Virus record (IMG/VR): IMGVR_UViG_3300030098_004828
Span: 124,001 to 188,000 of that record
DNA length: 64,000 bases
Reading direction: 5' to 3' (one strand)
Positions 3,025 to 61,960 of the stretch are shown in pieces (the stretch's first letter is position 1; every line of letters begins with the position of its first letter). A program made the translations under genes and the position numbers. The notes under the pieces are model-generated. The model worked only from the letters and a program-made list of their open reading frames with translations, ran no database searches and was not told where the DNA came from.

Positions 3025-3513
3025 TTATTTATTTAATTTTTGGTTTATACTCAATAATGCTTTTTCAATTCCTTTAAGAACATCTACTATGTCTCTTTTA
3101 TCTGGATTAGTTATTGGTGTTATACAGTCACTAACTTTAGGTTTAAATTGTTCCATTCTATTAGTTACATCATTAATAACTTTTAATTCAGATACAGGTA
3201 CAATATGTCTTTCAAATCCTGAACTACTTGTTACTGTTTCATATTCTTCAGCCCAATGAGGATTATGTTTAAATAAATATAATGTTCTTTTTGGATCTTC
3301 TGAGTTATATTCTATACTAACAAACTCAGTATAAATATCTCTACTTTTTTGTAATTCACTTGGAAAGAAAGATATATGTAACTCATCTTTTCCTGATGGT
3401 CTATATGCCATCTTTGGTATGTATAGTGCATTTATATTACCAGATTTTTGGAAATAATCTTCATGCTCTTCTTTTAATTTTAATACTTTTGCTTTACGCT
3501 CTTGTGGTGTCAT
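3025..3513 (-). CDS. Hypothetical protein (replication module)
   Basis: ORF track 3025..3555; ATG at 3513 (MTPQER) avoids overlap with the helicase. Confidence 0.7.
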   Translation of the reverse strand: MTPQERKAKVLKLKEEHEDYFQKSGNINALYIPKMAYRPSGKDELHISFFPSELQKSRDIYTEFVSIEYNSEDPKRTLYLFKHNPHWAEEYETVTSSSGFERHIVPVSELKVINDVTNRMEQFKPKVSDCITPITNPDKRDIVDVLKGIEKALLSINQKLNK

Positions 3514-43487: not shown

Positions 43488-44696
43488 ATGAATTTAAAAG
43501 AAAAAGTAAAAAATGCTTTAAAATGGAAAAAGAATTCAGAGTATTGTGCAGATAGAATAGGAATAACAGAAGAAGAATTTGATAAAATAAAAAAAGTAAT
43601 ACAAGCAGAAGAAAGAGAAAAAAGAAAAGAAGAAAGAGAAATGGGTTATGCAACAGATGATTGCACATCCTCATATGATATAGAAAGTGGTCAAGGAAAG
43701 ATTACTGGAATATCTCAAACAGAACCTAAATCCCCAGAAGAAATTATAAAAATATTAAATATTGATACAACACAATGGAAGTTATCTCAATATTGGAATA
43801 AACAAATGTCAGATCACTGGCGTATATCAGCTTTAATTACAAAGCTTAAAAATGATGATACTGCTCACATAGAACAATTACTTGAGAACTGGAAACCAAA
43901 AAAATTCTCTCCAGTTAAAAGAATTAAAAGTGAAGGTAAAAAAGATGTATGTGCTGTTTTATCATTACAAGATATTCATTTTGGTAAACAAGGTAATGAA
44001 ACTATAGATAAAGATTTTGAAGAAACTATTATGGATCTTGTAGAAAGAGCACATGCTAGTCATAATCTTAAAAAAATATTTTATGTAGTGGGAGGAGATC
44101 TAATGAATATGGATAGTTGGGCTGGTACTACTACAAGTGGTACTCCATTAGATAATTGCTCTACTGCTACGGAAGCATATACACAAGCATTTGATGCAAT
44201 ATATTGGAGTATAAATTTTATAAAGCAATATTGTGATGATCTGCAAGTAGTATATATACCAGGTAATCATGATAGGTTATCTTCATTCCATTTAACTCAC
44301 GCTTTATCTAGAGCTATAGATGATCCTAATATACTTTGGGATGTAACATATCTTGAAAGAAAAGTATATACATGGGGTGATAACTTTTTTGCTTTTGAAC
44401 ATGGGGATGTAAACACTAAAAATTCACTTTTACTTTATGCTACAGAGTTTCCACAACAATGGGGTATAACTAAAAATAGAACTTTATTTACAGGTCATTT
44501 GCATCATAAAAAGAAAGTAGAATATATTACTACAAATGAACGTACAGGCTTTATGTTAAAGATACTTCCAAGTCTTTCTAGAACAGATTATTGGCATTAT
44601 CATAACAAATTTGTAGGATCTAAAAGATCAGGTGTTATAGAACTTCATGACTATAATAAAGGTAATATATGTGAACTTACTTATTCTCCTGATTAA
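43488..44696 (+). CDS. Calcineurin-like metallophosphoesterase
   Basis: DIH, GD, GNHD, HGD, GHLHH motifs. Confidence 0.85.
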   Translation: MNLKEKVKNALKWKKNSEYCADRIGITEEEFDKIKKVIQAEEREKRKEEREMGYATDDCTSSYDIESGQGKITGISQTEPKSPEEIIKILNIDTTQWKLSQYWNKQMSDHWRISALITKLKNDDTAHIEQLLENWKPKKFSPVKRIKSEGKKDVCAVLSLQDIHFGKQGNETIDKDFEETIMDLVERAHASHNLKKIFYVVGGDLMNMDSWAGTTTSGTPLDNCSTATEAYTQAFDAIYWSINFIKQYCDDLQVVYIPGNHDRLSSFHLTHALSRAIDDPNILWDVTYLERKVYTWGDNFFAFEHGDVNTKNSLLLYATEFPQQWGITKNRTLFTGHLHHKKKVEYITTNERTGFMLKILPSLSRTDYWHYHNKFVGSKRSGVIELHDYNKGNICELTYSPD

Positions 44697-45278: not shown

Positions 45279-45950
45279 ATGACAACAATAGGAGACGTAG
45301 TATCCAGAGTCAGAAGCCAAATAAAAGCAGAGATTCAAGATGCTTTTGTTACTGACAGATACTTATATAGTTTAATCACAAAGAGTGCTCAACTTCTTAT
45401 GAGACGTCAAGATTCTGCTAATAAATTAAAAAAGTTTAATAGTGTATGGAAAACACTCCCATTTGTAGAATTAGAAGAAGTTGATAAGATAGAAGCTTGT
45501 TGTACAGGTATAGAGAGCGGTATGCTTATTAAGCGTACTAAATTAAAACTTCCAACTTTTATGGAAGGATATTGGGGACCACTTATTAGAACAGTTTCTT
45601 CTATTGATGGAAGTATAGAACTACAAGCAACACAACCTGGTACTTTTACATCAATGACAAAAACAACTTCTTTTAAATATAACAAAACAAAATATTTCTG
45701 GTTTATAGATGGTCATTTATATTTTCCAAATATAGACTGGGATGCTGTAAAAGTTGAAGGTATTTTTCAAGAAGATATTTCTTTATGGTTATGTAATGAT
45801 GAAGATAAATGTGTTCCAAGGTATAGACAAGAATGTAATATACCAGAATTTTTATTTGCAGAAATAGAACAACAAGTATTACAACAATTGATGGCAACTA
45901 TAAATGTTCCACAAGAAGATTCAGATAATAAACAAAATGTAAATAGATAA
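45279..45950 (+). CDS. Tail ring protein
   Basis: YFWFIDGHLYFPN...VEGIF; position. Confidence 0.65.
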   Translation: MTTIGDVVSRVRSQIKAEIQDAFVTDRYLYSLITKSAQLLMRRQDSANKLKKFNSVWKTLPFVELEEVDKIEACCTGIESGMLIKRTKLKLPTFMEGYWGPLIRTVSSIDGSIELQATQPGTFTSMTKTTSFKYNKTKYFWFIDGHLYFPNIDWDAVKVEGIFQEDISLWLCNDEDKCVPRYRQECNIPEFLFAEIEQQVLQQLMATINVPQEDSDNKQNVNR

Positions 45951-46870
45951 TGGGAAATAGTGTATCACAAAAATATAGAACGTTTAATCAATTATTAGAA
46001 GATGTTAGTATTGATTTTTCTGGACATGCTCTAGAAGGAAAAATAGAACCTCAACAACTTATCAAAGTTGCAACTAGGGTTAACTATGATTTAGGATTAA
46101 GAATTCATAGAACTAAAGAATATATATTAGATGTTGAACATAGTAAAGCTAAATTACCTGCAGATTTTGCATATTTAAATTATGCTTGGAGTTGTGGATC
46201 ATATACTGTTAGTCAAACAATGCCTTCAGGAACTCATGTAGATACTACTCAACCTAAATATGTTCCAGCTCCAGATGGAGGAGATACAGGGCCTTGTGAA
46301 GATCCTGGATGTAAAGATGTATGTGTTGTTCAAACTTGTCCCACTAAAAATACAGATGGTACAACAACGTATAATAATGAATACATGGTTGTTCAATATA
46401 TGGGTGCAGAACAATACCGTACATATTCTCAATTTTTTCCTCTTAGAATAAAAGAAACATCTCAAGTTCAATGTGATTGTCCTAACATAGGTATTAAGTC
46501 TGTAGATATTGCAGAAATTAGAGATGGTTTTTTATTTACAAGTTTTGAAACAGGTAAAGTATATTTAAATTATCAAGGAGCTATGGAAGATCATGAAGGT
46601 AATTTATTAGTATTAGATCATCCTTATTGTAATGAATATTATGAATATGCTATAAAAGAAAGAATATTAGAAAATATGATTTGGGATGGAGAAAATGTAT
46701 CTCAACAATTAGGGTTAATACAACAAAAATTAAGAGCTGCTAGAAATAATGCTTTAGGTTTTGTTAATACACCAAACTTTAAAGAATATCAAAAATGGCA
46801 TGAGCTTAATAGAAAAGCTCAATATCATAATTATTATAATATGTTTAAAAGTACTCCAACTATAAGATAA
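45950..46870 (+). CDS. Tail ring/tubular protein
   Basis: KAKLPADF, FLFTSFETGKVYLNY motifs; directly upstream of the muzzle. Confidence 0.65.
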   Translation: MGNSVSQKYRTFNQLLEDVSIDFSGHALEGKIEPQQLIKVATRVNYDLGLRIHRTKEYILDVEHSKAKLPADFAYLNYAWSCGSYTVSQTMPSGTHVDTTQPKYVPAPDGGDTGPCEDPGCKDVCVVQTCPTKNTDGTTTYNNEYMVVQYMGAEQYRTYSQFFPLRIKETSQVQCDCPNIGIKSVDIAEIRDGFLFTSFETGKVYLNYQGAMEDHEGNLLVLDHPYCNEYYEYAIKERILENMIWDGENVSQQLGLIQQKLRAARNNALGFVNTPNFKEYQKWHELNRKAQYHNYYNMFKSTPTIR

Positions 46871-46875
46871 TTATA

Positions 46876-49800
46876 ATGGCACGAAAGAAACAACAACAGA
46901 GACCGGATGTCCCTAGACCTGAATTACAAAATACATCTAATGTAGATACAGATGTATTTGTAAAAGGTATGACTAAGGATATGGATGTTGCCTTGACCAA
47001 TAAAGAAAATTGGACTCATGCTGTTAATGCTATTAATAATTCTCATCAAGGTGATGCAGGAACTATAGGAAATGAACCTGCTAATTTAGGATGTGCAGCA
47101 ATACCCTATACCATTATAGGTATGATTCATCTATATGGTGATAAATGGGCTATATTTTCAACAGATGATGTTAATAGTCAAATAGGAATATTTGATGATA
47201 GTCATTGTAAATATGATATTGTTGTTAATGATCCTTGTTTAAATTTTAACAAACGTTATTTAATTACAGGAGCTTCTAAGGAAAGTTTTGAGTGTCAGTG
47301 GTGGGTATACTGGGATGATGGTATAAATCCTTCTAGAGCTCTTAATACAGCGGATGTACCATATATTCAAACTAGTTATACAGAAGATGATGGATGTGTT
47401 ATATATGAAGATCAAATACCTTTAAGACTTGATTGTGAAAAAATAAGATTAAATCCTATCCTTGATGTTCCATGTATTAAGTTGTCAAAAGCAAAAGATG
47501 GTGGTCAATTACAAAATGGATCTTATGAAGCTTATATTGCATATGTAGTAGATGATAATAAAGTAACGGATTATTATAAATCTAATATACAAACTCTTTG
47601 GGATCATCAAGATAATGCAGGATCACTAGATATAGATATTGAAAACTTAGATAAACAATTTGAAAGTTATCAATTAGTTATCTATACAAATGCAGGTATG
47701 AATTCATATGCTGTAGTAGTAGGAACATATAGTACAGAACAATCTCATATTAATATTGATATGATAGATATGTCTGCTTCTACACCAGGTCTTGTAGATC
47801 AATTACCATTATATACTCCTATTTTTGAAAAGTCTGAAAAGATGTATGCGGTTAATGACTATCTTCTAAGACAAGGTCCCACTACAAATTTTGATTTTAA
47901 TTATCAATGTCAAGCTAATAATATAACAGCTAAATGGGTTTCTGTAGAGTATCCGGCAGATTATTATGTAAAAGGTGGTAACAAACCAACTTTTATGAGA
48001 GATGAACAATATTCTTTCTTTATAAGATTTGTTTATAATACAGGTAATAAATCTTCTTCTTATCATATACCAGGACGTGCTGCTGTTGGTATACCTGCAA
48101 ATGATATGGGTGTTCCTCCTGATATGAATCAAACATTATCTGGTGAAGCCGGGTTTCCAAATTGGAAAATAAATAATACTGCATTTCAAACAATGTCTAT
48201 AGATGCAGGTGGTGGTGAAAATATAGGAACATATACAGATGATGGAGGATTAATTGTTGCAAAAGGATGGATGGGATATTGGGAATCAACAGAAAGATAT
48301 CCTAATGATCCAGTTAGATGGTGTGATCTATGTAACACTCCTATAAGACATCATAAATTTCCTGAAGAAGGAACAAGTATTTGGACACAAAGAAACAATC
48401 CAAATAATCAATTTATATATGTATTAGGTGTAGACTTTGATAATATAGAATGGCCAAGATATATAGATAAGGATGGTTTTGATGTACCAATACCAAATAT
48501 AGTTGGTTATGAAATACTAGTGGGATCTAGACAAGGTAATAAATCTATTATAGCAAAAGGTCTTGCTAGAAACATGAGAAGGTATGATATTCAAAATGCT
48601 CAAGGTGAACGTGGTATTGCTGATGCTGAAGGTGGTGATGATAACTTAGAAGGATTAATGCCTAACTATCCATTTAATGATTTAGATAGAGATCCATATT
48701 TATCACAACAAGAAGTTATAAGACAAAGTGATTATGTACCTTATGGTCCTAATTATACAATGCATAATATATTTACATTCCATTCTCCAGATACTTCGTT
48801 TGATAGACCTTTCTTAAGTCCATCTGAAATTAAAAGTTATGGTGTAACAGGAGGATATTCTTTAGGTAGATTTAAAAGATCAGAGGATCATCCTAAACAT
48901 AAATTAATAAGAGATATTGCAGCTATTATTGCAGCTATTATTGGTGCAGGTTATGCTATTATGGAAATGCGTGGTGAAAAGGTTCAAAAAGTAAAAGGAT
49001 CTAAAGCATTATCTATTGGTCAAGATCCAGGACCATATAATCAATCAGATGCACTTAAAGATGAATCAACTATTGATACTACTGCTGGTACAGGTACAGG
49101 TGGTGTAAGTATTGCAGGTGTTTATGCTTCAGGGGGTACAGGTACAGGTGGTACTGCTAATGTTGATATGGATGTTAGTAATGATTCAGGACTTGAAGGT
49201 ACAAACCCTGCTGCTACCGATGATGATGGAATTACTAATCAAGACCTACAAAATATAAGCCCTACTCTTCCTCCTGATCCTAGTGGTGTTGATACTGATA
49301 CAGGTATAGAAACAGTAAATGGTGGTGGTGCAGCTCCAGGTATGGCTGGTAATATAAGTATAACTGATCCAGGTCCTGTTGGTTTTATACCTCCAAGTAT
49401 TGTTACTCAAACATTAACAGCAGATGGTGCTACTGCTGATTATCAGTTAACTTATGGTCCTAGTACATCTCAAGCACAATTAAATGCATATGAAAATATG
49501 CAAGCTTTTAATACCGCACAAGAAAATGATGCACCAGGAACTCCAGCAGGTCAAGAAGGTCAACAAGGATCAGGTGGTACAAGTTCAGGTAATCTTAACA
49601 TTATATCAGGTATTAATATTAATGATATTGCTAATGGATTTCAACCAACACAAGAAAGTGAATTTTCAATGTCTACTACACCTATAGGTGATGCAACTAA
49701 TCTTATTCTTACTGGTGGTCTTCCTAATAGTGTTTCAGGTGCAGAAGAAGATTTCTTACATGATATAAAAAGTAAGGGTGATAATGCTGCAATGCAAACA

Positions 49801-52800
49801 ACTGGTTATACAGGATCTAGTAGAGATGTTGAAATGAAAGGGAGTAAGTATAAATCATTACCAGGATTTTTACAAATAATGTTTAAGACATATTCATTCT
49901 TAAACTTCATGGTTGAAGGTGGTGAAGGAATTATAGAGATGATTTATGAATTTATGAATCCTCAAGACTATGCATATAAATATAATTCTTATGGTATGTA
50001 TAGTGGTAATTTTATTCCACAAATGGGTGATAGACATAGAATAGAATGTAAAAGAGCTAGATACTTATCAAGTGCATTTCAAAATCTTGGACCAGAATAT
50101 AAAATAAATAATTTACATAGACCTAAAACAGTTGTTTTACAAGGAGTTGAAAATCTTGTATCTCCTTCTTCTCCACAATACTGGAGAGATAATTCAAAAT
50201 ATGTATTAGGAGAACTTCCTTCATGGGTATTGCAAAATCCTACACAACCTGTAACAACTAAAATATCCGCTCACTATGTAGGATTAAAATATAGAATAGA
50301 TAATCAATATGGTCAAATACAAAGTATAAGACAACTACCTGTAAAATGTGCAGGGATTTTTAGAAACGCAGCTTTTCCTAGTTCTGCTGATGTTAATAAT
50401 GCAGAACCAAATGAAACTATATGTACTACTTGTGATGAAGAGACAGGACTTATATTTGATGAAAATACTAGATTTAGATCAGAAGTCATATTTGGTGGTG
50501 ATTGTTTCATTAATAGATATAGTGAAAAAGTTATAATGCCATTCTTTTGGGATTTCTTAAAAGGAGAACCAGATGGATATACTTTTGATTATAGATTGCA
50601 TCAAAATGTTCCTTTTGTTAGATTCTGGTATAATTCACAAAAATATGAATTATCTGGATTTGTTAGACCTATTACAGATTTAAGTTTTTCTTGGTTATCT
50701 GATCCTAGTGATCCAGGATTACCTTCAGCTCTTCATAACTTAGATAGAATAGGTAGTGGTAACTATAATGCTATAGATGAAGGATGGTTATCTGGTACTC
50801 CTAATAATGAAGATGATTGGTGGATGACTGCAAACTCAGAAAGTCAATCAGGTATGTTTGGTGATGGATTTGGTGGTCTAGGTGGTGGAACAGGTTGGGG
50901 TTCAGGTACTGATGCTAATACTACTGGTACAACTTATACAGATGGTGGTCCACCTGATACATCAGGAGATAGTGTATCACAATCAACTTCTAACTGGGCA
51001 AGTTCAGGAGGACAAGCAACAAAATCTAATGGAATCTTTACATTAAAGAATGCTTATTGCTATTTACATTCTAGTGGTATAAATGAATTCTTTGTAGAGT
51101 CAGAATTAAACATGGCTCAAAGAGATTGGGATGATAAACCTGCAGGTAGACATTATGATTGGCAAGAGTTTACAGATGTTAATGCATTATTTCATGCAGA
51201 TATTATTAAAGATGGAAACTTTTATAAGTTTGATAGATCTTTAATGTGGAGAAATTTAGGAAGTCAATTATTATCATACGGTTTTGTACAACCATTAAGT
51301 TATGATCCAGTAGTTGCTGAAGAGTGTATGACACATTATCCAAAAAGAATAATGTATTCATTAAGAGCTCAGGATGAAGCTAAAAAAGATTTTTGGAGAG
51401 TTTTCCTTCCATTTAATAAAGAAGACTTTAAAGAGCCTGTAACTACTATTAAACCTATAAATAAAACAGGTGCTGTAATATTATTTCCACATAGATCTCC
51501 TCAAATATGGCAAGGTGTAGATACATTACAAACAGAAGGTAACACTAAAGTTACAATAGGAGATGGAGGTTTATTTGCTGGACCAAGACAAAATATTACA
51601 AATTCAGATCTTCCAAATGAATATGGTTCTTGTGAAAATATGCTTAGTGCAATTAATACACCAGCTGGTTTATTTTATATATCACAACAACAAGGTAAAA
51701 TATTTAACTATACGGGCGGTTTAGAAAATATTGCTGATAGAGGAATGAAACAATGGTTTAATAATTTTCTTCCTTCTAGACTATTAATGGAGTTTCCTGA
51801 AATGGAAGGTTCTATAGATGCAGACAATCCAATTATGGGTATTGGAACTCAATCAGTTTATGATGCTAAACTTGATTTAGTTTACTTTATGAAAAAAGAT
51901 TATGCATTATGTGATCATTCAGGATGTATACAATGGACAGAAGATGATGGATTTGTTTATAATAATACATTATGTAATGATGCAGATCAAATAGCTTCAT
52001 GTCCTGATGGTTATACATTGTATGAAGCTGGAGATGTGCATCCTGGAACAGGAGAAGTTTTAACAGAAGATACTTGTTGTAATATAGTTAGAGATGATTA
52101 TCAAGAGTTTGAAGAAGCTACTATGGATTGTAATACAACAGTTTATGTAGTCCCTGAAATTTTTAATTTTGAAAGACTCCCTAATGATGAAGTTTTAACT
52201 AAGCATGAAAAAAATACAGTTCTTTTTAATGTATCTGATGATGTATTTGAAAACATCAGAGAAAAGAAACCTATGAAAGTTAAACTAAATATTCCTTTCA
52301 TAGATGGTAGAAGAATAAATTTAACTTTAAAGAACTTTGAACCTCATAGAAAAAATACTAGAGTTTTAACAAAAAGTAAAGATGGAACTGTAGAAAGAAA
52401 TTATGTACCTAATATACGTGCATATAGAATAAGAAATAAAGAAATACTTAAAAATGGTAAAGAAGTAAAAGCTACTGGATCCATTATTTTCTCTAGAAAA
52501 GCATTTACAGGTTTCATAACAATAGGTAATCAACAATATGAAATTAGAAGGCGTGGTCAAAATAAATACGCATTAATACATTCTTATGATGTTAAGGAAA
52601 GTCCTTTATTTGCTTGTGATACTAACACATCACACAGCATTCCTGATTCAGTTAAATTAGAAGATTTACCAAGAACAGCAAGACAACTTGCTAAAAGTGG
52701 TAATAGTTCACCTGATCATTGTATTAATTTAGCTGTTACAGTTGATTATTATACATATGATTTTCTTGGTCAAAATTATCAAGACACAAGTGATTGGGCA

Positions 52801-55800
52801 ATGATGTTAGTTGCAGCAGTGAATGAAATATATATGAATGATCTTAATATTTCAATTACAAGTGATTTTATTTATATTTATACAGATGAAAGTGTAGATC
52901 CATTTGCAGATTGTTGTGGAAGCAACCAAAATGATATGCTTCCGGTACTTAGAGATCAATGGGATGGTGATGAACCAGATTTTGATGGTGTTATTAGAAG
53001 TATAGCTACTTTATTTACTGCTAGGGGTTGTGGTGGAGTAGCATATACAGGTGGATTATGTTATAGAAATAATTGGGGTTACAGTGTTAATGGTTTTTGT
53101 GGAAATAACATGCCTTCAGGCACACTTCCAATACAAGGACAAACTACAGAAGGTTATGATATAGAAGATGGTTTTGTGAATCTTACTAATTCATTAACTG
53201 TAAAAATAACAGCTCATGAAATAGGTCATAATGTTGGTACATTACATACACATGATTGTGTATGGGAGCCAGATCCAGTTTATGGTTTTGGTGGATTTAC
53301 AGGTGATACAGGTCAAATTGATATTGGTGGTAACCTAGTTTATTCTATGTTTATAGATAATTGTGAAGACGATTGTGATGAAACAGCAACTGCTGATTGT
53401 GGATCAGAACCTATTGATTCAAGTTGTTGGCCATCTCCTTGGCCTATGCCTTATCAAGAAAATTTAACTAATACAGCATTTGAGTATACTACTTTAATGG
53501 GTTATAATGAAAATTTAGCTTTTCAGGGTTGTATAACTTATGATCAACTTAATGGGATTTTAGGATTTCATCCAATAGTTATGGAACAAGCTATAAACCC
53601 ATGGGTAGATGATGTACAAGCTAATAGTGGTACTTCATGGAATCTTTTTGGAAATCAAGAAGGTGAAACAAATTGTTTATCTTGTGCTGATGTAAATGGT
53701 GAAAATGGTGGAGGTGATGATGATCCTATTTATGAATGTGATGACTTACAAGAATTTTTAGATGCTACAATTAATTCTGAATTAGGATGGCTTGTTGAAC
53801 AAGGTGGATCAGGAGGTTATACACCAACTCAATATTGTAATTATTGTGATAATCCAGTTGCAGATAATATTAATGCAATAGAAGGTTCATTAGATCTATG
53901 TAATTGTTGTACAGGAGGAGAACTTATAGTGGAAGGTTGTACAAATCCAAATGCAACAAACTATAATCCTAATGCTAATGTAGATGATGGATCTTGTGAA
54001 ATTGTAGGTTGTACAGATCAGTTTGCAACTAACTATAATCCAAATGCAAATATGACATGTATGGGTGAAACCGGTTTTATAGAAAATGGTTGTTGTCTTT
54101 ATGATTATAGTTGTAATAATTATTATTTATGGGTTGATGCTACAATTAATTCACAATTAGGTTATGATTGGACTCCAAGTGATTATTGTACTTTTTGCTT
54201 AAATCAAGAATTTTATGCAGATGATCCTATAATGACTCTTGAAAATGCAACAGAATTCTGTAGTTGTTGTAATGGAGAAGATGTAGAGATTTTTGGATGT
54301 ATGGATTCAGAAGCAAATAACTTTAATCCATTTGCAACTACTCCATGTAATGGAACACAAGGAGAATATGGACCTACAATTTCAATTATAAACGGTACAT
54401 TTAGTGGAGGAATTACTATACCAGAAGGAATAGAAAATGTAAATGGAGATTCTGTTCCTGCTGGATATTATTCTCCTACATTTTATTTACCACCAGATGG
54501 ATGGCATGCATGTAAAAATGCTAATTTTAATCCTATTATGGGACAATTAGGTGAAGACTGGCCTAATATTACTACATATGCAAATTCTGGAGGAGGCACT
54601 GGTGGTGGTGGTGTAAACGTTGAAACTGGAGAATGTTGGAATTTTGTTTTACCAGCTTCAGATTTCTTTGGTGATGATAGCTTACCTGATTCTGGACCAC
54701 ATGGTAATATTACACCAGATAATTATACTGATTGGTTCTTTGATAATCTAGGGGATCCTGGAATATGTGGTGGATATTCCAGTATAATAGCAAATGATAT
54801 AATTAATTCAGGTATAAGTACTCACGCATATGGAGATGGTTTTATGGGTATGGCTTGGTCTCCAAGTTTTCGGGAAGATATGCCTTATTATGTTTTTGAA
54901 ACTGGTCAGGAATATGATGCAACTTGGGCGTATGAATGGCATAGAGAAGGAGTGGGACAAGAATTAAGTAGTCCAATGATAGCAAATGTTGAATATACAA
55001 TGAGTGTTGTTGTAGCTAATTCATCTGGTGGTTATATATTAGATGGTTATGAGTGGGAAGCTGCTGGTGTAAGAATATGGGGTGGTAATTGTGCTTGTCC
55101 TAATGATGATAATGGAGGTGAATTATTATGGGAGTCAGAACCTCAATCTGGAAGTTCCGATGTACCTATGGAATGGGTTACACGTACTGGAACATTTACA
55201 CCAACTCAAAATTTTACACATATAACTATAGAACCAGGTAATGGTGGTGAAACATGGAATGGACCATCTACACCTGGTAATGAATGGAATGGACAAACAA
55301 CTAATGGAGAGTCAGGTATATATGGTGCCGGTAATGACGTTTATATATTTTTAGATTATGTTAGTGATATAACTCCAACAGCTATATTAGGTGAAGATAA
55401 TGATTGTTGTGAATATGGATCTGAGGAAGAAGAAGAAGGAGGAGGAGAAGAAACATTAAGTTGTGAACAAATTCAAGAAGATCCTCAAGGTTATATTGAT
55501 ACATTAATTAATGATCCTATAGGTTTAAATTGGCCTCCAATTGAATTTTGTATGTTCTGTAATGGAAGTATACAAAATGAAGAGGTTGCTAGTATTGGTG
55601 AAGTTTGGAGTGCATGTAGTTGTCTTTGTACTGAAGAACCTAGACCTTTACCTGATTGTGATGACATGTGGACTTTTATTAATGATAATATTAATTCACT
55701 GGGAGTTAATTATAATTGGACAGTAGATAATTATTGTACATTTTGTTTAAATCCTTCATTATTTGGAGTTGTTCAAGATGTTGAAGGTGTTTTAGATTAT

Positions 55801-58800
55801 TGTGATTGTCCACAATGTGAGAATACTCCTTATGATCCAAGTAATGAAACAATAGATTGTGAATGTTTTTGTCCTGATGGTTATGATTTAGTATTTAATG
55901 ATCCACCAACTTATACATTAGCAGATCCAGAAATAGATTGCGTTGCTGATGTTATACCTCTTCTTGAAATGCCTACAGTTGAAATATGTGATACTACATT
56001 AGCTGAAAATGCAACATTTGTAACTAACCCAGGTTTAAATGTAGACGGTGGTACATTTGGTGAGATTGGACAAAATAAAACACCATCTCCTTGGATAGTA
56101 TGTATGAGAGGAAGTAATCAAGAGGCACCAGGTTATTATCCTGATGGCTTTTGTTATGACGGAATGGTAGAAGATGGTGTACAATATGATATGACATTTA
56201 CAACCGACACATGGACAGGACAAGGTAATGCTCTATCTGTAGATAATTTGGATTATGTAATGGATCCTTTTAATCAATATGCTATAGATCCTTATGAAGG
56301 AGATGCTTATGTTGGAATGCTTCATAGTTTTAGTTGTGATGGTCTATGTAGTGAAGGTTGTGATGTTGGTCTATGGCAAGAAGGAATGGCACAAGCATTA
56401 GAAGATGCAGATGGAAATCCTACATTTTTATTTGCAAACCAACAATATGTTGGTAAATTCTATGCAACACAATTAGTAGGTTGGAATACACGTCATAGAG
56501 GATACATAGATGAGGAAGAATTTTTAGAAGACGGTATAACTCCAAATCCAACTTTTGGTAATTTTATCTTAAATAATCCTTGGACTTATCCATTAGAAGA
56601 AAATTATCAAGAGCAAGGTGATTTTGCAGGATCTGTAGGATCTGCAGCTGGTGGGGATGCTGTTGATGCAGAAGGAAACCCTGTATCACACAGGATAACT
56701 CCTCAAATAGAAATATGGGGTGGTACTGATCAATGCGGAGTTCAAGGTGAAAACGGTTTATATTTAGGTGGAGAATTTAATTATGAAGGTAATTATAATT
56801 CTGAATTATTATGGAGTTCAGGTCCTATAATGTCTGCAGATAATTGGACAGAATATAATTATGAGTTTACTCCTACAAATGATTGGGCATGGATACATAT
56901 AAGAGTTCAATTACTAATAGATGGAGTTCCAGCAAAAACAGATGAAGATACCACTAATGGAGTTCCAGCAAGAGATAAAGCTACGTATGTAGTTATAGAT
57001 GGTTTTGTAGCTCCAACAGAAGATGTTAAATGCTGCACATGTCCTGAAGGTTATCAAAGAGTATTAAATGATGGAATATATCAAACACCTATATCAGAAC
57101 AAGAGTGTATAAAAGAACATGATGCGGATGGTGCTTACTTAACTTATTCAGATGAGTTTGATGTAATATGTGTAAAGTGGGAGCCTACAATGAATGACTT
57201 AGTATGTTTACAGCAATGGTCAGATATTACAGGTGATTGTGTAGATCCTCAATATGAAGATGATGTAGATCTTATTGAATTAACAGACGAACAATACTTT
57301 AAAGATGTTTCATGGACAGTAAGCTATGATCCAAAAATAAAAGGTTGGATTTCATTCCATGATTGGCATCCGGAACTTAGCATGCCAAGTTTAAATCACT
57401 TCTTAACAACTAATACTTTTGAAGTTGATGATATTTATTGTCCTCCTGGATGGGAATTAAATGATGGAATTTGTTGTCAAAATATTGTTGGTAGTTTTGA
57501 AGGTACTGAAATTATTGAAGAAGAAGATGTTACTATAGATCAAAATCCTGATGAACCTAGAGAAGAATTTTGTCCTATAGATATATATATAGCATTAGAT
57601 TTTTCAGGTTCAAATTTTTCCGTGCCAGGATTTCAAGGTAGTGGGGGTTCTGTTTTTAATGATTACTTTATTAGGGAATTTGTAGATACATTAGATATGC
57701 AAATGGATGGTTCAATTAGTGGAAATATGACAAATGCAACTAATCAAATACAAGTTGGTGTGGGTGCATGGACATCAATGTTACCAATGAATCTAGAACC
57801 TTTGTGTCCTTGGGGTGATTCTGATAGTGCTGGTATTATAAATCAAAATGTAACAGGTTTAACTAATAATGCATTAGAAATATATAATACAGCAAATAGT
57901 ATGATAAATAGTCAGCAGGCTATGTATGGTATAGCGGCTACTACTGGACCTGGAGATACTTATCAAGCGGCTATGTCAGTAGCTTATAATGAATTTAATA
58001 ATACTGTAGGTTCTTCACCTTTAGGTGATAGATCTGGTCAAAATGGTTATCAAAAACATTTAATTATTGTTACAGATGTAACATCTATTTCTCCTTGTAA
58101 TAATAATTGTACTTGTTGTGGTACTGGTAATCCTTATCCTGATCAATCTATGGATTATTATTTACAACTAGCACAAGCTGAAGGATTTACAGTTCATGTA
58201 GTTTGGTCAGGAGCTCCAGGGGGTCAAAGTCTCCAACAAATAATAGATAGAACTGAATGTTTACTTACTTATTCAAACGGACAACTTTATCAAATTGGTG
58301 TAAATAATATAAATGATACAGATGCTGTTGCTGCTAATACACAAGCTGTTGCACAAAATATTGCACGAGATTTAGATTGCACTCTTCCTCCTGATCCTAT
58401 AGAATGCTTATGCCCTGATGATACTTGGACAATGGTTTATTCAGCTGATGGTGGTGATACTTTTACATTAGAAGAAAATCCTGATCCAACTGCAGATTGT
58501 GAACCAGGTAGAACAGCTGTATGTAGAAAAATAAATTGTTATTGTGATGATTCACAAGTAGAATCTGATTTAACTGATATAGATATTACTACAACGGGTG
58601 AATGTAGTGATATTTATGAAGTGGGAGAAGAAGACTATGTTAATCCAAATCCTCTTTTCTGTAGTTATGATTCTGAATATTGTACAACAGGAAGTAATAT
58701 TAGAGGAGGATTATGGAGACATAATTATAGATGTAATTTATTTTCTAATTATTATGATGTTCAATATGGTTGGGAAATTGAAATGGTTGAATCAGTTGGT

Positions 58801-59529
58801 CAAACAGTTAATACTTTAAGAAGTATTGAATATGAAATGGAGGCTTATTTATATAGAAGACCTTTAGACTGTGAAGGAAATGCTATATGTGGATGGACTA
58901 CATGGGATGGTGGAACTCATCCAATATATACTCCTGGTCTTGACATGGATCAAGAATGTACAATGAGAGCTCATCAATTAGATTATAATTTTAATTGGGC
59001 TTATATTTATAATACAGAACAAGTTTCAGGTGATTTACATTTAACTTTGAAACCTAAAAATAATGCTCCAGAAATCAATAATTATCCACAGACAACTATT
59101 GATGAAGAATGTAATGAAAATAGTTTCTATGATATATTGTATGATAAGGTAGAACAAAAATATAGATTTAATCAATTCTGGGATATTACAGCTAATAGAG
59201 GTGAAAATATACAACCCGCAGGAAACTTTGATAGTGGTAGTGGTCCAGATCCTGTTCAACATATTATAAATTTACATTTAAATGGTTATACAAGAGTTTT
59301 AAATTCTTTAAATTTAGATTATGATAAACCACCACTTCAAAGAAAAAAATTCAGACATTATTGGAATAAAGTAACTTTAATGAGAAAACCAATTCCTGTA
59401 ACACCAACAAGTGATATGACGTATGGTGAAACTTATGTTTATGATAAAGATGGAAATCCAGTATTATTGGAAAGAACAAAAATGTTACTTAAATTAGATA
59501 ACGCAAAAATTAATGTATCCTTTAGATAA
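46876..59529 (+). CDS. Giant muzzle (tail stabilisation) protein with inserted metalloprotease, Cys repeats, CBM-like and vWA domains
   Basis: Muzzle-type motifs (FVKGMTKD, GNEP, YWDDGINP, FMRDEQYSF, FHSPD, FGGDCFI, FFVESE, WTVSY...WISFHDW, LWRHN) interrupted by HEIGHNVGTLH and DFSGS domains. Confidence 0.8.
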   Translation: MARKKQQQRPDVPRPELQNTSNVDTDVFVKGMTKDMDVALTNKENWTHAVNAINNSHQGDAGTIGNEPANLGCAAIPYTIIGMIHLYGDKWAIFSTDDVNSQIGIFDDSHCKYDIVVNDPCLNFNKRYLITGASKESFECQWWVYWDDGINPSRALNTADVPYIQTSYTEDDGCVIYEDQIPLRLDCEKIRLNPILDVPCIKLSKAKDGGQLQNGSYEAYIAYVVDDNKVTDYYKSNIQTLWDHQDNAGSLDIDIENLDKQFESYQLVIYTNAGMNSYAVVVGTYSTEQSHINIDMIDMSASTPGLVDQLPLYTPIFEKSEKMYAVNDYLLRQGPTTNFDFNYQCQANNITAKWVSVEYPADYYVKGGNKPTFMRDEQYSFFIRFVYNTGNKSSSYHIPGRAAVGIPANDMGVPPDMNQTLSGEAGFPNWKINNTAFQTMSIDAGGGENIGTYTDDGGLIVAKGWMGYWESTERYPNDPVRWCDLCNTPIRHHKFPEEGTSIWTQRNNPNNQFIYVLGVDFDNIEWPRYIDKDGFDVPIPNIVGYEILVGSRQGNKSIIAKGLARNMRRYDIQNAQGERGIADAEGGDDNLEGLMPNYPFNDLDRDPYLSQQEVIRQSDYVPYGPNYTMHNIFTFHSPDTSFDRPFLSPSEIKSYGVTGGYSLGRFKRSEDHPKHKLIRDIAAIIAAIIGAGYAIMEMRGEKVQKVKGSKALSIGQDPGPYNQSDALKDESTIDTTAGTGTGGVSIAGVYASGGTGTGGTANVDMDVSNDSGLEGTNPAATDDDGITNQDLQNISPTLPPDPSGVDTDTGIETVNGGGAAPGMAGNISITDPGPVGFIPPSIVTQTLTADGATADYQLTYGPSTSQAQLNAYENMQAFNTAQENDAPGTPAGQEGQQGSGGTSSGNLNIISGININDIANGFQPTQESEFSMSTTPIGDATNLILTGGLPNSVSGAEEDFLHDIKSKGDNAAMQTTGYTGSSRDVEMKGSKYKSLPGFLQIMFKTYSFLNFMVEGGEGIIEMIYEFMNPQDYAYKYNSYGMYSGNFIPQMGDRHRIECKRARYLSSAFQNLGPEYKINNLHRPKTVVLQGVENLVSPSSPQYWRDNSKYVLGELPSWVLQNPTQPVTTKISAHYVGLKYRIDNQYGQIQSIRQLPVKCAGIFRNAAFPSSADVNNAEPNETICTTCDEETGLIFDENTRFRSEVIFGGDCFINRYSEKVIMPFFWDFLKGEPDGYTFDYRLHQNVPFVRFWYNSQKYELSGFVRPITDLSFSWLSDPSDPGLPSALHNLDRIGSGNYNAIDEGWLSGTPNNEDDWWMTANSESQSGMFGDGFGGLGGGTGWGSGTDANTTGTTYTDGGPPDTSGDSVSQSTSNWASSGGQATKSNGIFTLKNAYCYLHSSGINEFFVESELNMAQRDWDDKPAGRHYDWQEFTDVNALFHADIIKDGNFYKFDRSLMWRNLGSQLLSYGFVQPLSYDPVVAEECMTHYPKRIMYSLRAQDEAKKDFWRVFLPFNKEDFKEPVTTIKPINKTGAVILFPHRSPQIWQGVDTLQTEGNTKVTIGDGGLFAGPRQNITNSDLPNEYGSCENMLSAINTPAGLFYISQQQGKIFNYTGGLENIADRGMKQWFNNFLPSRLLMEFPEMEGSIDADNPIMGIGTQSVYDAKLDLVYFMKKDYALCDHSGCIQWTEDDGFVYNNTLCNDADQIASCPDGYTLYEAGDVHPGTGEVLTEDTCCNIVRDDYQEFEEATMDCNTTVYVVPEIFNFERLPNDEVLTKHEKNTVLFNVSDDVFENIREKKPMKVKLNIPFIDGRRINLTLKNFEPHRKNTRVLTKSKDGTVERNYVPNIRAYRIRNKEILKNGKEVKATGSIIFSRKAFTGFITIGNQQYEIRRRGQNKYALIHSYDVKESPLFACDTNTSHSIPDSVKLEDLPRTARQLAKSGNSSPDHCINLAVTVDYYTYDFLGQNYQDTSDWAMMLVAAVNEIYMNDLNISITSDFIYIYTDESVDPFADCCGSNQNDMLPVLRDQWDGDEPDFDGVIRSIATLFTARGCGGVAYTGGLCYRNNWGYSVNGFCGNNMPSGTLPIQGQTTEGYDIEDGFVNLTNSLTVKITAHEIGHNVGTLHTHDCVWEPDPVYGFGGFTGDTGQIDIGGNLVYSMFIDNCEDDCDETATADCGSEPIDSSCWPSPWPMPYQENLTNTAFEYTTLMGYNENLAFQGCITYDQLNGILGFHPIVMEQAINPWVDDVQANSGTSWNLFGNQEGETNCLSCADVNGENGGGDDDPIYECDDLQEFLDATINSELGWLVEQGGSGGYTPTQYCNYCDNPVADNINAIEGSLDLCNCCTGGELIVEGCTNPNATNYNPNANVDDGSCEIVGCTDQFATNYNPNANMTCMGETGFIENGCCLYDYSCNNYYLWVDATINSQLGYDWTPSDYCTFCLNQEFYADDPIMTLENATEFCSCCNGEDVEIFGCMDSEANNFNPFATTPCNGTQGEYGPTISIINGTFSGGITIPEGIENVNGDSVPAGYYSPTFYLPPDGWHACKNANFNPIMGQLGEDWPNITTYANSGGGTGGGGVNVETGECWNFVLPASDFFGDDSLPDSGPHGNITPDNYTDWFFDNLGDPGICGGYSSIIANDIINSGISTHAYGDGFMGMAWSPSFREDMPYYVFETGQEYDATWAYEWHREGVGQELSSPMIANVEYTMSVVVANSSGGYILDGYEWEAAGVRIWGGNCACPNDDNGGELLWESEPQSGSSDVPMEWVTRTGTFTPTQNFTHITIEPGNGGETWNGPSTPGNEWNGQTTNGESGIYGAGNDVYIFLDYVSDITPTAILGEDNDCCEYGSEEEEEGGGEETLSCEQIQEDPQGYIDTLINDPIGLNWPPIEFCMFCNGSIQNEEVASIGEVWSACSCLCTEEPRPLPDCDDMWTFINDNINSLGVNYNWTVDNYCTFCLNPSLFGVVQDVEGVLDYCDCPQCENTPYDPSNETIDCECFCPDGYDLVFNDPPTYTLADPEIDCVADVIPLLEMPTVEICDTTLAENATFVTNPGLNVDGGTFGEIGQNKTPSPWIVCMRGSNQEAPGYYPDGFCYDGMVEDGVQYDMTFTTDTWTGQGNALSVDNLDYVMDPFNQYAIDPYEGDAYVGMLHSFSCDGLCSEGCDVGLWQEGMAQALEDADGNPTFLFANQQYVGKFYATQLVGWNTRHRGYIDEEEFLEDGITPNPTFGNFILNNPWTYPLEENYQEQGDFAGSVGSAAGGDAVDAEGNPVSHRITPQIEIWGGTDQCGVQGENGLYLGGEFNYEGNYNSELLWSSGPIMSADNWTEYNYEFTPTNDWAWIHIRVQLLIDGVPAKTDEDTTNGVPARDKATYVVIDGFVAPTEDVKCCTCPEGYQRVLNDGIYQTPISEQECIKEHDADGAYLTYSDEFDVICVKWEPTMNDLVCLQQWSDITGDCVDPQYEDDVDLIELTDEQYFKDVSWTVSYDPKIKGWISFHDWHPELSMPSLNHFLTTNTFEVDDIYCPPGWELNDGICCQNIVGSFEGTEIIEEEDVTIDQNPDEPREEFCPIDIYIALDFSGSNFSVPGFQGSGGSVFNDYFIREFVDTLDMQMDGSISGNMTNATNQIQVGVGAWTSMLPMNLEPLCPWGDSDSAGIINQNVTGLTNNALEIYNTANSMINSQQAMYGIAATTGPGDTYQAAMSVAYNEFNNTVGSSPLGDRSGQNGYQKHLIIVTDVTSISPCNNNCTCCGTGNPYPDQSMDYYLQLAQAEGFTVHVVWSGAPGGQSLQQIIDRTECLLTYSNGQLYQIGVNNINDTDAVAANTQAVAQNIARDLDCTLPPDPIECLCPDDTWTMVYSADGGDTFTLEENPDPTADCEPGRTAVCRKINCYCDDSQVESDLTDIDITTTGECSDIYEVGEEDYVNPNPLFCSYDSEYCTTGSNIRGGLWRHNYRCNLFSNYYDVQYGWEIEMVESVGQTVNTLRSIEYEMEAYLYRRPLDCEGNAICGWTTWDGGTHPIYTPGLDMDQECTMRAHQLDYNFNWAYIYNTEQVSGDLHLTLKPKNNAPEINNYPQTTIDEECNENSFYDILYDKVEQKYRFNQFWDITANRGENIQPAGNFDSGSGPDPVQHIINLHLNGYTRVLNSLNLDYDKPPLQRKKFRHYWNKVTLMRKPIPVTPTSDMTYGETYVYDKDGNPVLLERTKMLLKLDNAKINVSFR

Positions 59530-61901
59530 TGAAAAATAAGAAAAAAGAATATGGCGGTTCGGGTGGAAGAACTACAGCTCTAAGAAACTTCATGTATGAT
59601 AAGAAGAGAAATAAACCATTTGGTGAAGATATTGATGATTTATATGAAGCTAGATTTGGTAGCTGGTTAAAAGATAAATGGGATGCTAATAAAGATACAA
59701 TTCAAAAATATGCAGACTATGCTTCTTATGTCCCTGTTATTGGAAAAGCTGCAGGTTTTGTTAGTGCAGGTATAGATACATATGATGCCTATCAAGCGTA
59801 TCAAGCAGGTGATATGGATACCTATAGAAAGGAAAGAAATAAAGCTCTTACAACTGCTATGTTTAGTGGTACACCTGGACAATATGTTAAAGGTGCAATT
59901 AAAACTGGTATAAAAAAAGCTACTCCACAATTAGCAACAAAGACTACTGCTCATGTAACTAAAACAGGAATTAAAGATGGGAGTAAAGAATTACAAGATA
60001 CAACACAAGAAAATCCTATTATTGATAGTTCAATACCAACAGGAGCAAATGTTAAAGATCCAAGAGAAATGGCTAGTATAGGTATAGAAACAAGAGAAAT
60101 TTTACATAATCAAATAACTAATCAACTTTTAAATCAAGTAGAAAATGAATGGACTACTGATCTTCAAAAAGATAGAAATAATGTTACAGGTAAAAGTTCT
60201 ACAGATTATACTGTAGATTTTATAGAAAATACACCAGAATATTCTTCATTAAATAATATAGAATTACCCTTTGGAAGTGTATCTGTAAACTCTCCCTTTA
60301 CTCATAAATCATATATAACTGAAGGTGGAAAATCAAATAAAGATGTTAATGATAAATATATAGAAAATATTAGTATTAATAATGATATATCTAAAGTAAA
60401 AAGTTTTAAAGAAGAATCAGATTTAACAATGGATACTTTATATAGAGAAGATGATTGGAGTGATTATAATGTTGCACAACATAATGATGTTATAAGAATA
60501 CAAAAAGAATTAGTAAATAATGGATATGATATTGGAGATTCTGATAATGAAATTGTAAATAGAACTATAGAACCTAGATATAAAAATAAAGGTGTAGATG
60601 CAAAGTTTGGAAATAAAACTAAAAAAGCATGGTTTGAATATCAATTTAATAAATTAAATATTCAAAATAAAAATTTAATGACAGCATCTTATTATGATAA
60701 ATTAGAAAATTCTGATGATGTAAATTGGAAATTTAATATATATAATTCTAAAAATAAAAAGTTTAATTATGAAAATGCCAGATCTAAAGAGTATAATCAA
60801 GATGATAAATTAGCTTATATAGAAAGTATTGATGGTATAATGTCTCCTGATGAATATAAAAATACTGAAGAAATTTTAAACTTCTTAGATAATAGTATAC
60901 CTGAATTAACTAAAGATATGTTGGTAGAGATAGATCATAATTGGGTAAGCAATACAGTTTTAGCAATGATTAAAGATAAAGTACCAGTAAATTTAGATAA
61001 AATTGATCCAGGTGTTTTAGAGTATTTTGATATAGATGAAATTAATATTAATACAGATCCTAAAAAATTAGCAGTATTAACTGCTTATAATCTTATAAAT
61101 AATTATTCTAAAATAAAATCACATTTAGAAACTTCTCAATCTTTATCAGAAAATATTGAAGAATATCAAATAAGAGATCTTGCTAGTTTTAAAATGGGTA
61201 ATAGATATATAGACCAAAGACCTGATGAATATACAGATAAAGAAATATTAGAAAATCAATTAATGACTGCAGAAAATTTAAGAAGGTTATTAGAGAATGA
61301 AACTGTTGCTGATAGAAATAAAATATTATCTACTGATAACGCTCAAGAAATTATAGCTAATGCAAAAAATGCTTTAAGTATTAGTACAGGAAATATTGAT
61401 AATATAGCTAATACTTCAAATATTAGAAATAAAATAAAAACTAAAGGTGGAGAAATAAAAGAACCAAAGTATACAGGAAAGTATGCAAAGTATGGATATC
61501 AACTTGATAAAGAATGGGCAGCAAAAAAAGAATATGAAAATGGTGGAGATATTGATTCAAAATTAGAAAAAACTTTATTAAGTAAAAAATGGATTAAACC
61601 TAGAGAACATAAGCATAAAAAATTTAATATGGCTTCGTTACCAACGCATATAATATTAAATTCTCTTGATTTAAAGTATATGAAAAGAGGAGGTGATTAT
61701 CCTGATATGGGAGTAAAAATTAAAATATATAATGATTATTTAAATGGTGTTTTTGATAAAATGGATAATAAAGAACATAAAAAGAAAGCGCATAAAATAG
61801 TTAATAAATTAAATAGATTTTATATGTATGATGCAAGAGATAATAATCAACATGTATTTGATTATATGAAATCACAGTTAAGTAAGCCTAAGAATAAATA
61901 G
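59529..61901 (+). CDS. Probable ejected (cargo) protein with peptidoglycan-binding-like domain
   Basis: DVIRIQKELVNNGYDIG...GVDAKFGNKTKKAWFEYQ (PG_binding_1-like); position after the muzzle. Confidence 0.6.
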   Translation: MKNKKKEYGGSGGRTTALRNFMYDKKRNKPFGEDIDDLYEARFGSWLKDKWDANKDTIQKYADYASYVPVIGKAAGFVSAGIDTYDAYQAYQAGDMDTYRKERNKALTTAMFSGTPGQYVKGAIKTGIKKATPQLATKTTAHVTKTGIKDGSKELQDTTQENPIIDSSIPTGANVKDPREMASIGIETREILHNQITNQLLNQVENEWTTDLQKDRNNVTGKSSTDYTVDFIENTPEYSSLNNIELPFGSVSVNSPFTHKSYITEGGKSNKDVNDKYIENISINNDISKVKSFKEESDLTMDTLYREDDWSDYNVAQHNDVIRIQKELVNNGYDIGDSDNEIVNRTIEPRYKNKGVDAKFGNKTKKAWFEYQFNKLNIQNKNLMTASYYDKLENSDDVNWKFNIYNSKNKKFNYENARSKEYNQDDKLAYIESIDGIMSPDEYKNTEEILNFLDNSIPELTKDMLVEIDHNWVSNTVLAMIKDKVPVNLDKIDPGVLEYFDIDEININTDPKKLAVLTAYNLINNYSKIKSHLETSQSLSENIEEYQIRDLASFKMGNRYIDQRPDEYTDKEILENQLMTAENLRRLLENETVADRNKILSTDNAQEIIANAKNALSISTGNIDNIANTSNIRNKIKTKGGEIKEPKYTGKYAKYGYQLDKEWAAKKEYENGGDIDSKLEKTLLSKKWIKPREHKHKKFNMASLPTHIILNSLDLKYMKRGGDYPDMGVKIKIYNDYLNGVFDKMDNKEHKKKAHKIVNKLNRFYMYDARDNNQHVFDYMKSQLSKPKNK

Positions 61902-61960
61902 CTATGTTAGATTATGTGGTTAGAATTTAGTATATTATAATATATAGTAGACTTTTTAAT

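Follow-up and report, generated by a model that had tools for sequence, protein, structure and literature searches.

A predicted metzincin zymogen within the muzzle protein of a marine crassvirus

Protease module in the muzzle gene

We analysed a 64,000-nucleotide stretch of DNA (hereafter, the window; positions 124,001 to 188,000 of IMG/VR virus record IMGVR_UViG_3300030098_004828) in which a single open reading frame (ORF) on the plus strand, 46876–59529, encodes 4217 amino acids (aa) with no internal stop. The encoded protein is a homologue of the crassvirus muzzle, and it carries what is predicted to be a complete protease zymogen. The original prediction had placed a reprolysin-like metzincin zymogen at 52140–53610, inside a tail muzzle protein; the zymogen is found there, with its in-frame start at 52141, not 52140. 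The gene and the module comprise the following features.

46876–59529, plus strand: muzzle protein gene, 4217 aa (ORF; identical protein in a 98-kb ENA contig)
52141–52620, plus strand: prodomain (aa 1756–1915), basic and rich in beta strands, with FAC1914D at its end (Cys codon, 52615–52617); predicted local distance difference test (pLDDT) ~90, Cys conservation, alignment with the ADAM17 cysteine switch
52621–52710, plus strand: prodomain–catalytic linker (aa 1916–1945), flexible, of basic composition (PRTARQLAK), a site at which activation cleavage may occur; pLDDT ~50, composition
52711–53610, plus strand: catalytic domain (aa 1946–2245); Pfam, profile comparison with snake-venom proteases, fold search, residue conservation

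The catalytic domain contains the zinc motif HEIGHNVGTLH (nucleotides (nt) 53215–53247), which fits HExxHxxGxxH with H2114, E2115, H2118, G2121 and H2124, and a Met-turn, TLM2208GY (aa 2206–2210; nt 53491–53505). Both motifs, as well as YFMKKDY at aa 1670 (51883–51903), FACD at aa 1912–1915 (52609–52620) and WTVSYDP at aa 3480 (57313–57333), lie where the original prediction had put them. The Pfam models Reprolysin_5, _4, _2 and _3 matched aa 1950–2131 with E values of 1.5e-11 to 5e-7, each above its gathering score (Reprolysin_5, 45.3 bits versus 27), in agreement with the predicted family; Pfam gave no M60 match in the muzzle ORF, and no PHROG or NCBIfam model matches the module. An exhaustive HMMER search recovered 844 relatives of aa 1756–2260, the best cellular-type relatives, which come from marine metagenomes, being covered over both prodomain and catalytic domain at ~33% identity with E values down to 5e-40. 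A word-based homologue search with the protease piece recovered a strain fragment alone.

A family alignment of 79 sequences was used for conservation counts, for the profile and for AlphaFold2. The switch residue Cys1914 is kept in 78 of the 79 aligned sequences, H2114, E2115, H2118 and H2124 in all 77 and Met2208 in all 74 that could be counted at these positions. The family profile matched trimerelysin II, a snake-venom metalloproteinase (E 6.6e-20), the prodomain plus catalytic domain of ADAM17 (2.3e-18) and the isolated ADAM17 propeptide (3e-4), and hidden Markov model (HMM) alignment placed the family 'nfsCg' on the ADAM17 cysteine switch PKVCG. The AlphaFold2 model of the module (pLDDT 77.7; predicted template modelling score (pTM) 0.85) was confident in the prodomain and the catalytic domain and of low confidence in the linker (aa 1916–1945). 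When this model was compared with the Protein Data Bank (PDB) using Foldseek, the top four matches were zymogen ADAM17 structures, aligned over ~440 columns that include the prodomain (E 6e-13 to 1e-11), followed by dozens of snake-venom and ADAM catalytic domains, with a probability of 1.0 to ADAM17, ADAM8, ADAM22, ADAM33 and many of the snake-venom proteases and a target template modelling (TM) score of ~0.6.

Lysine and arginine make up 19.4% of the prodomain versus 1.7% of the catalytic domain, bearing out its description as basic in the original prediction, and phage prodomains as a group contain 17–21% versus 9.8% in cellular relatives. The linkers between the two domains are Arg/Lys-rich in muzzle-borne modules and Asn/Ser/Gly-rich in cellular relatives; given its basic composition and flexibility, we infer that the linker is a candidate cleavage site. 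Thr2125 follows the third zinc His (family consensus, H-T-H). Asp in this position (HExxHxxGxxHD) is a strict feature of the adamalysins (M12B), and because the module has Thr there, we class it as M12/reprolysin-like and not among the adamalysins in the strict sense. On the basis of the Pfam matches, the profiles, and the match of the modelled fold to the ADAM17 zymogen, the module is predicted to be a complete M12/reprolysin-like metzincin zymogen with a cysteine-switch latency architecture; the homology of the flanks described below sets it inside a muzzle homologue, as first proposed.

Identity of the muzzle and its neighbours

The flanks of the module, which the original prediction had taken for conserved muzzle segments, were assigned on the basis of profile matches, gene order and colinearity with known muzzle proteins.

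45279–45950, plus strand: gene for tail ring protein 2 (R2 homologue), separated from the muzzle gene by the R1 gene; Pfam CrAss_Ring_2 (PF25702), E 6.7e-17, 62.3 bits versus a cut-off of 27
45950–46870, plus strand: tail ring protein 1 gene (R1 homologue), adjoining the muzzle gene on its 5′ side; Pfam CrAss_Ring_1 (PF24228), E 8e-10
46876–51912, plus strand: muzzle core, N-terminal part (aa 1–1679), with last strand VYFMKKDY; Pfam crAss_MUZ and BLASTP to the csAssE-Sib muzzle and gp44
57286–57432, plus strand: muzzle right flank (aa 3471–3519), DVSWTVSYDPKIKGWISFHDWHPE; BLASTP to csAssE-Sib muzzle residues 2012–2064, near-invariant in the family
58681–59529, plus strand: muzzle core, C-terminal part (aa 3936–4217); BLASTP to csAssE-Sib muzzle residues 2052–2187, family-wide conservation

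The muzzle gene follows the R2 and R1 ring genes, which is the order that precedes gp44, the muzzle gene of phicrAss001 (gp40...gp43-gp44); a relative (L004) has the same ring–ring–muzzle order, and terminase, portal and major capsid genes lie farther 5′ of the ring genes. The Pfam model crAss_MUZ (PF25731; cut-off, 27 bits) matched aa 25–218 at 40.7 bits when aa 1–500 were queried and aa 1581–1679 at 33 bits (profile positions 1111–1192 of 1224) when aa 501–1680 were queried; it was reported only for these pieces and not when the undivided 4217-aa protein was scanned against Pfam. In the epsilon crAss-like phage csAssE-Sib, a protein annotated 'Muzzle protein' aligns through its residues 1704–2016 with aa 1401–1711 and through its residues 2012–2064 with aa 3467–3519 (BLASTP), so that the two flanks separated here are contiguous there.

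Homology to gp44 was detected by BLASTP, by hhalign and by Pfam on pieces. BLASTP aligned gp44 residues 1122–1252 with aa 1586–1727 (E 2e-5), and a family profile free of inserts aligned to gp44 residues 1084–1304 over both of the insertion sites described below (hhalign; probability 87%, E 4e-6). Neither the whole protein (phmmer) nor the insert-free C-terminal profile (hmmsearch) matched any PDB sequence. The insert-free C-terminal part gave a poor structural model (pLDDT 49), the sole significant PDB matches of which were the phicrAss001 muzzle chains 7QOL_P (3e-4) and 7QOK_A (4.6e-4). The 4217-aa ORF is a genuine crassvirus muzzle homologue.

Several neighbouring genes deserve mention in their own right. 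A gene for an SbcD-like DNA repair exonuclease (43488–44696; PHROG 704, E 3e-48) lies amid the structural module, with genes for large virion proteins on one side and the ring genes on the other. The gene 3′ of the muzzle gene (59529–61901) encodes a Lys-rich protein of 790 aa without a family match and, by its position, may encode a cargo protein like phicrAss001 gp45; in relative L004, the gene that follows the muzzle gene encodes a protein of 2170 aa that contains the cell-wall domains LysM and YkuD. A further long ORF starts at 61960 and runs past the end of the window. In csAssE-Sib, a human gut phage, a small gene of its own, a few genes 5′ of the muzzle gene (L003, 2620–3081), bears the annotation 'periplasmic metallopeptidase, effector'.

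Architecture of the inserts

The zymogen (aa 1756–2245) accounts for only the first quarter of a multi-module insert of ~1790 aa, and a second insert lies in a neighbouring loop. The original prediction was right to set the zymogen between the two flanks; the two-loop placement and the larger display array had gone unnoticed.

51913–57285, plus strand: site-1 insert (aa 1680–3470), ~1790 aa, mapped to a predicted hairpin within one of the C-terminal propeller blades; flank gap relative to homologues, hhalign across the site
51913–52140, plus strand: acidic, Cys-containing entry linker (aa 1680–1755); 23.7% aspartate plus glutamate, 6 Cys, shared with a protease-less relative (P0173)
53611–54375, plus strand: post-catalytic Cys-rich modules (aa 2246–2500) with three GCTxxxAxNYNPxAxxDDGSC-type motifs; same motifs in cellular homologues
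54373–55485, plus strand: module A (aa ~2500–2870), probable carbohydrate-binding module (CBM)/galactose-binding-like beta-sandwich; atlas matches of 0.90–0.93 to Bacteroidota clusters, CBM_4_9/DUF642-like (a lead only), hypervariable between strains
55513–57285, plus strand: further Cys-rich modules, module B (aa ~3050–3390) and exit linker; no Pfam, PHROG or NCBIfam match
57433–58680, plus strand: site-2 insert (aa 3520–3935), VWA-like, with a DFSGS motif of the metal-ion-dependent adhesion site (MIDAS) type; atlas matches to VWA clusters, 0.88

The gap between the muzzle flanks spans 1770 aa here versus 11–40 aa in the shortest homologues (~1670 aa in total length); in other homologues it measures ~100–130, 350–530 or 560–950 aa, with one at 1192 aa. 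The site between the flanks is an insertion hot spot. At site 2, many family members have a VWA domain recognized by Pfam, and five other muzzles hold the protease. In gp44, residue 1021 is the last of the IG2/crass region, which would place the inserts described here in the C-terminal propeller blades, away from the published insertions.

The GCTxxxAxNYNPxAxxDDGSC-type motif occurs three times at aa ~2351–2495 (53926–54360) and is common in secreted proteins of Flavobacteriales; no Pfam model matched it. In a cellular homologue (P0012), motifs of this type directly follow the catalytic domain (residues 417–490), and because these post-catalytic motifs are shared, we consider the phage module to be colinear with a secreted protease of Flavobacteriales stripped of leader and C-terminal tail. 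Module B resembles module A only weakly (E 0.024), and no insert module has an NCBIfam or PHROG match.

The insert array is strongly acidic and has 59 Cys after the catalytic domain. Lysine and arginine amount to 1.6–2.2% of the displayed inserts (51913–58680) versus 7.6–9.9% of the muzzle core, and the depletion is equal in the site-1 inserts of 81 protease-less muzzles (mean, 3.0%). Self-protection from the protease carried on the same protein was considered as a cause of this scarcity and rejected, given that these 81 inserts and the catalytic domains of cellular proteases are also poor in both residues; the depletion is a general property of these tail-tip arrays. The crassvirus muzzle thus appears to be a modular display platform with two predicted propeller hairpins, into which cassettes as long as 1800 aa (protease, VWA or sugar-binding-like) can be fitted.

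Integrity of the locus

We considered whether the find could be an artefact, either a motif arising by chance or an assembly chimera of a bacterial protease gene with a gene for a phage tail protein, given that the window derives from a metagenomic contig and that the short GCT...DDGSC motif draws many unrelated metagenomic contigs. However, an identical 4217-aa protein (P0172) is encoded in a separate 98-kb ENA contig; two Logan contigs (12.4 and 10.3 kb), each from a different study, are identical to the window over 51600–57500, both junctions included; and a contig from a strain of ~97% identity in a third study crosses the left junction into the protease. The module also stands in frame in 12 other muzzles from other samples. 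Independent assemblies thus span the junctions, and the artefact explanation, which the original prediction had named as a possible refutation, is itself refuted for practical purposes; we consider its probability negligible. The metagenomes that contain the region number at least six, and all are marine.

The source contig (IMGVR_UViG_3300030098_004828) measures 245,646 bp, whereas the contigs of relatives reach at most 123 kb, with many at 115–123 kb, and one Logan record with the region has 199 kb. A head-to-tail dimer of a ~123-kb genome is unsupported, as a 40-mer from the protease is present once, and the contig may represent an unusually large crAss-like genome.

Distribution and origin

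Marine data contain more than 2700 homologues of this muzzle, of which 186 were examined. The protease module occurs in 13 of the 186, at site 1 in eight and at site 2 in five, a pattern that needs at least eight changes on the core-protein tree. The module is an optional cassette at two loops of related muzzles. Of the relatives that are informative at the insert, the nearest (P0173; 62% identity) is protease-less—it tracks the window to aa 1765 and then differs until aa 3277.

All 13 muzzle-borne modules keep the prodomain. Cys1914, the H-E-H-H residues and the turn Met are kept in all nine modules that align across the catalytic domain, at ~30% mutual identity; among the other muzzle-borne copies, three show H-E-H-H by pattern search and one ends before the motif. 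The Gly of HExxHxxGxxH is replaced in two members of the clade, by Ala (P0158) and by Arg (P0208).

In a quick tree of the protease, the ten aligned muzzle-borne modules and two 'orphan' muzzle fragments form one clade (Shimodaira–Hasegawa-like approximate likelihood-ratio test (SH-aLRT), 98), the sisters of which are marine cellular-type proteases. A scan of 185,579 species genomes with an 11-sequence alignment gave its best matches in uncultured marine Flavobacteriales, at no more than 37% identity. The original prediction of a host-derived enzyme is therefore only loosely supported: the nearest cellular relatives do come from marine Flavobacteriales, but the identity is low and the phage copies form a single clade. 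This clade argues for a single old capture over a recent pick-up from the host, and the sequences point to one such capture of a secreted protease of Bacteroidota type, followed by spread of the cassette among phages and between the two loops. The module was absent from 50,697 GenBank phage records searched by tblastn, and full-text literature searches turned up no crassvirus or phage tail reported to carry a reprolysin or metzincin.

Variation between strains

Comparison of the window with a second strain (X9) showed 29 non-synonymous and 6 synonymous changes in the catalytic domain, clustered in the loop at aa 2012–2024 and leaving every catalytic residue unchanged, versus 0 non-synonymous and 3 synonymous changes in 273 codons of the muzzle core. 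The post-catalytic Cys-rich stretch is ~97% identical between strains. Within module A (54424–55341; aa ~2517–2822), four segments of 63–409 nt are replaced in X9 by unrelated sequence of similar length, and the module looks like a determinant of host specificity. The changes in the catalytic domain and the variable module A are marks of an exposed, host-facing part of the protein, with the proviso that the counts are small and that the X9 contig contains homopolymer errors. These errors comprise four 1-nt indels that split the ORF in the X9 contig (L087, matching 51390–53128 of the window); pseudogenization was rejected as their explanation because all four lie in homopolymer runs, as expected of sequencing noise.

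Possible role of the protease

The muzzle of phicrAss001 is a hexamer at the tail tip that has been described as a gatekeeper and is expected to touch the cell surface. We propose that a muzzle hairpin was extended here into a display array of ~1790 aa, on which a latent protease would cut proteins of the host surface or matrix at the tail tip, a proposal to which we give roughly an even chance. If the muzzle is hexameric as in phicrAss001, each virion would carry six zymogens at the point of first contact. Ligation of the zinc by Cys1914 would silence the enzyme during assembly in the reducing cytoplasm, and activation would take place outside the cell, where a cut in the basic linker and/or thiol oxidation—both established openers of the cysteine switches of matrix metalloproteinases—would open the switch. 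A nick in the linker could be tolerated, with both halves anchored in the propeller. The active enzyme might then cleave a proteinaceous barrier or receptor layer of its host, most likely a marine Flavobacteriia-type member of the Bacteroidota, or the protein-rich matrix around it, while the adjacent variable binding modules hold the tail tip on the surface during cutting; the protease would thereby act as a proteolytic counterpart of tailspike depolymerases. That the prodomain is present in all 13 copies and that catalytic and switch residues are invariant in nine of nine at ~30% identity argues for maintained, regulated catalysis. The fuller version, in which six cysteine-switch-latent metzincins are armed outside the cell or on contact and cut protein receptors or coats, and in which the cassette hops between two loops and its surface evolves fast, is held more tentatively, with confidence clearly below even.

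Several points weigh against the proposal. Both the phage and the protease are known from sequence alone, and phage and host are uncultured. Thr2125 occupies the place of the adamalysin Asp, and the two Gly-replaced copies (P0158 and P0208) may be impaired. The ratio of non-synonymous to synonymous rates (dN/dS) between the strains is about 1.2, a value from small counts that could reflect relaxed constraint instead of an arms race. The geometry of the insertion sites relative to the tail axis is not fixed by the poor model of the flanking propeller (pLDDT 49), and the prodomain might never be released from the topology of an internal insert.

Some of these points would suit a purely adhesive role, in which a zymogen that never unlocks would act, like inactive ADAMs, only as folded scaffolding or a surface for binding. 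The prodomain in 13 of 13 copies, the lack of an evident activating protease, the Gly replacement in two members, a dN/dS of about 1 and the resemblance of the adjacent units to binding modules are all consistent with such a role, whereas the invariance of the H, E, H, H, the turn Met and the switch Cys in aligned copies at ~30% identity would be unexpected for a pure scaffold; judging from the sequences, adhesion alone is less likely, and we regard it as unlikely. Lower still do we rate self-processing, in which the protease would cut the muzzle or cargo to mature the tip or to open the channel for ejection of DNA and cargo, as the original prediction had offered alongside surface cutting. 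The protease does lie covalently within the protein described as a gatekeeper in phicrAss001, and the basic flexible linker is a plausible intramolecular target, but the module is missing from 173 of the 186 homologous muzzles, including P0173 at 62% identity and the basal 1670-aa forms, so gating is independent of the protease; placement in two different loops likewise suits an accessory on display more than an internal mechanism that depends on exact position. Muzzle processing or tail opening is therefore disfavoured and appears improbable.

A different timing or target is somewhat more credible than either of these, although still a minor possibility: the protease might destroy receptors or serve in release, detaching progeny from debris and decoys, or it might work in the periplasm and cut envelope proteins once the tip has crossed the outer membrane. 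Receptor-destroying roles are established for tailspike enzymes. The same evidence for an active, displayed protease underlies these options and the cutting of a surface barrier, and the present data do not separate the two. The LysM and YkuD domains encoded after the muzzle gene in relatives show that envelope-directed functions cluster here; against periplasmic action, the acidic, disulfide-rich array of ~1790 aa, in which 59 Cys follow the catalytic domain, seems made for use outside the cell and not for passage into the periplasm.

If surface cutting at the tail tip is correct, protein barriers (surface coats, adhesin lawns, receptor decoys and marine gel proteins) would join what phages remove, and zymogen latency by a eukaryote-style cysteine switch, so far undescribed for phages, would enter virion biology. 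Modular display on the muzzle is relevant to the evolution of host range in one of the most abundant phage groups, and aa 1680–2500 offer a clear recombinant target for a putative new marine protease.

Comparison with known systems

The closest structural parallels are ADAM17 and the snake-venom metalloproteinases, with which the module shares HExxHxxGxxH, the Met-turn, the alpha/beta catalytic fold and an N-terminal, beta-rich cysteine-switch prodomain. Identity to ADAM/adamalysin zymogens is 13–20%, with Thr here instead of Asp after the third His, and in the Met-turn T-L-M-G-Y, unlike that of ADAMs, a Tyr stands two residues past the Met, as in astacins and serralysins. The phage module also lacks the disintegrin domain, signal peptide and membrane anchor of ADAMs, and it is embedded in another protein and not N-terminal. 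The closest relatives by sequence are secreted reprolysin-like proteases of marine Flavobacteriales (for example, RPG57662.1 of Flavobacteriales bacterium TMED191; Reprolysin_2 to _5), which are 27–37% identical to the module and arrange prodomain, catalytic domain and GCT...DDGSC motifs in the same succession. These are stand-alone proteins of 400–1000 aa that match from about residue 30 and end in TSP_3, LRR or other tails, whereas the phage copies are leaderless, have more basic prodomains and linkers, and form a clade of their own.

Among crassvirus proteins, phicrAss001 gp44 (PDB 7QOK/7QOL) has a homologous core, the same gene position after R2/R1 and a length that varies by insertions. 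It comprises 1371 aa without an enzyme domain, and the published insertions lie in the crass and IG2 domains (residues 318–1021), whereas the sites used here correspond to gp44 residues ~1190 (site 1) and ~1230–1240 (site 2) in the C-terminal propeller.

To our knowledge, the known phage-tail enzymes attack sugars (capsule, lipopolysaccharide or extracellular polysaccharide) or peptidoglycan. Such virion depolymerases and peptidoglycan hydrolases (tailspike glycosidases and lyases; M23 domains in tail proteins) resemble the present case in being enzymes fused to tail proteins, modular, exchangeable and active at adsorption or penetration; they differ in cutting polysaccharide or peptidoglycan, in their folds and in not being zymogens. 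Here, too, the enzyme is covalently part of a tail protein, but the predicted fold is that of a metzincin and not a polysaccharide-cleaving beta-helix, so that the likeness to tailspike depolymerases is an analogy at most and not membership. Outside phages, baculovirus enhancin is a virion- or occlusion-associated zinc metalloprotease that digests insect gut mucin before entry; it differs in its M60-like family, in its virus and host realm, in being a separate protein and in lacking a cysteine-switch prodomain. Viewed against these systems, the muzzle-borne module is plausibly a variation on the known theme of tail-mounted enzymes, robust in its anatomy as read from the sequence and plausible in its proposed function.

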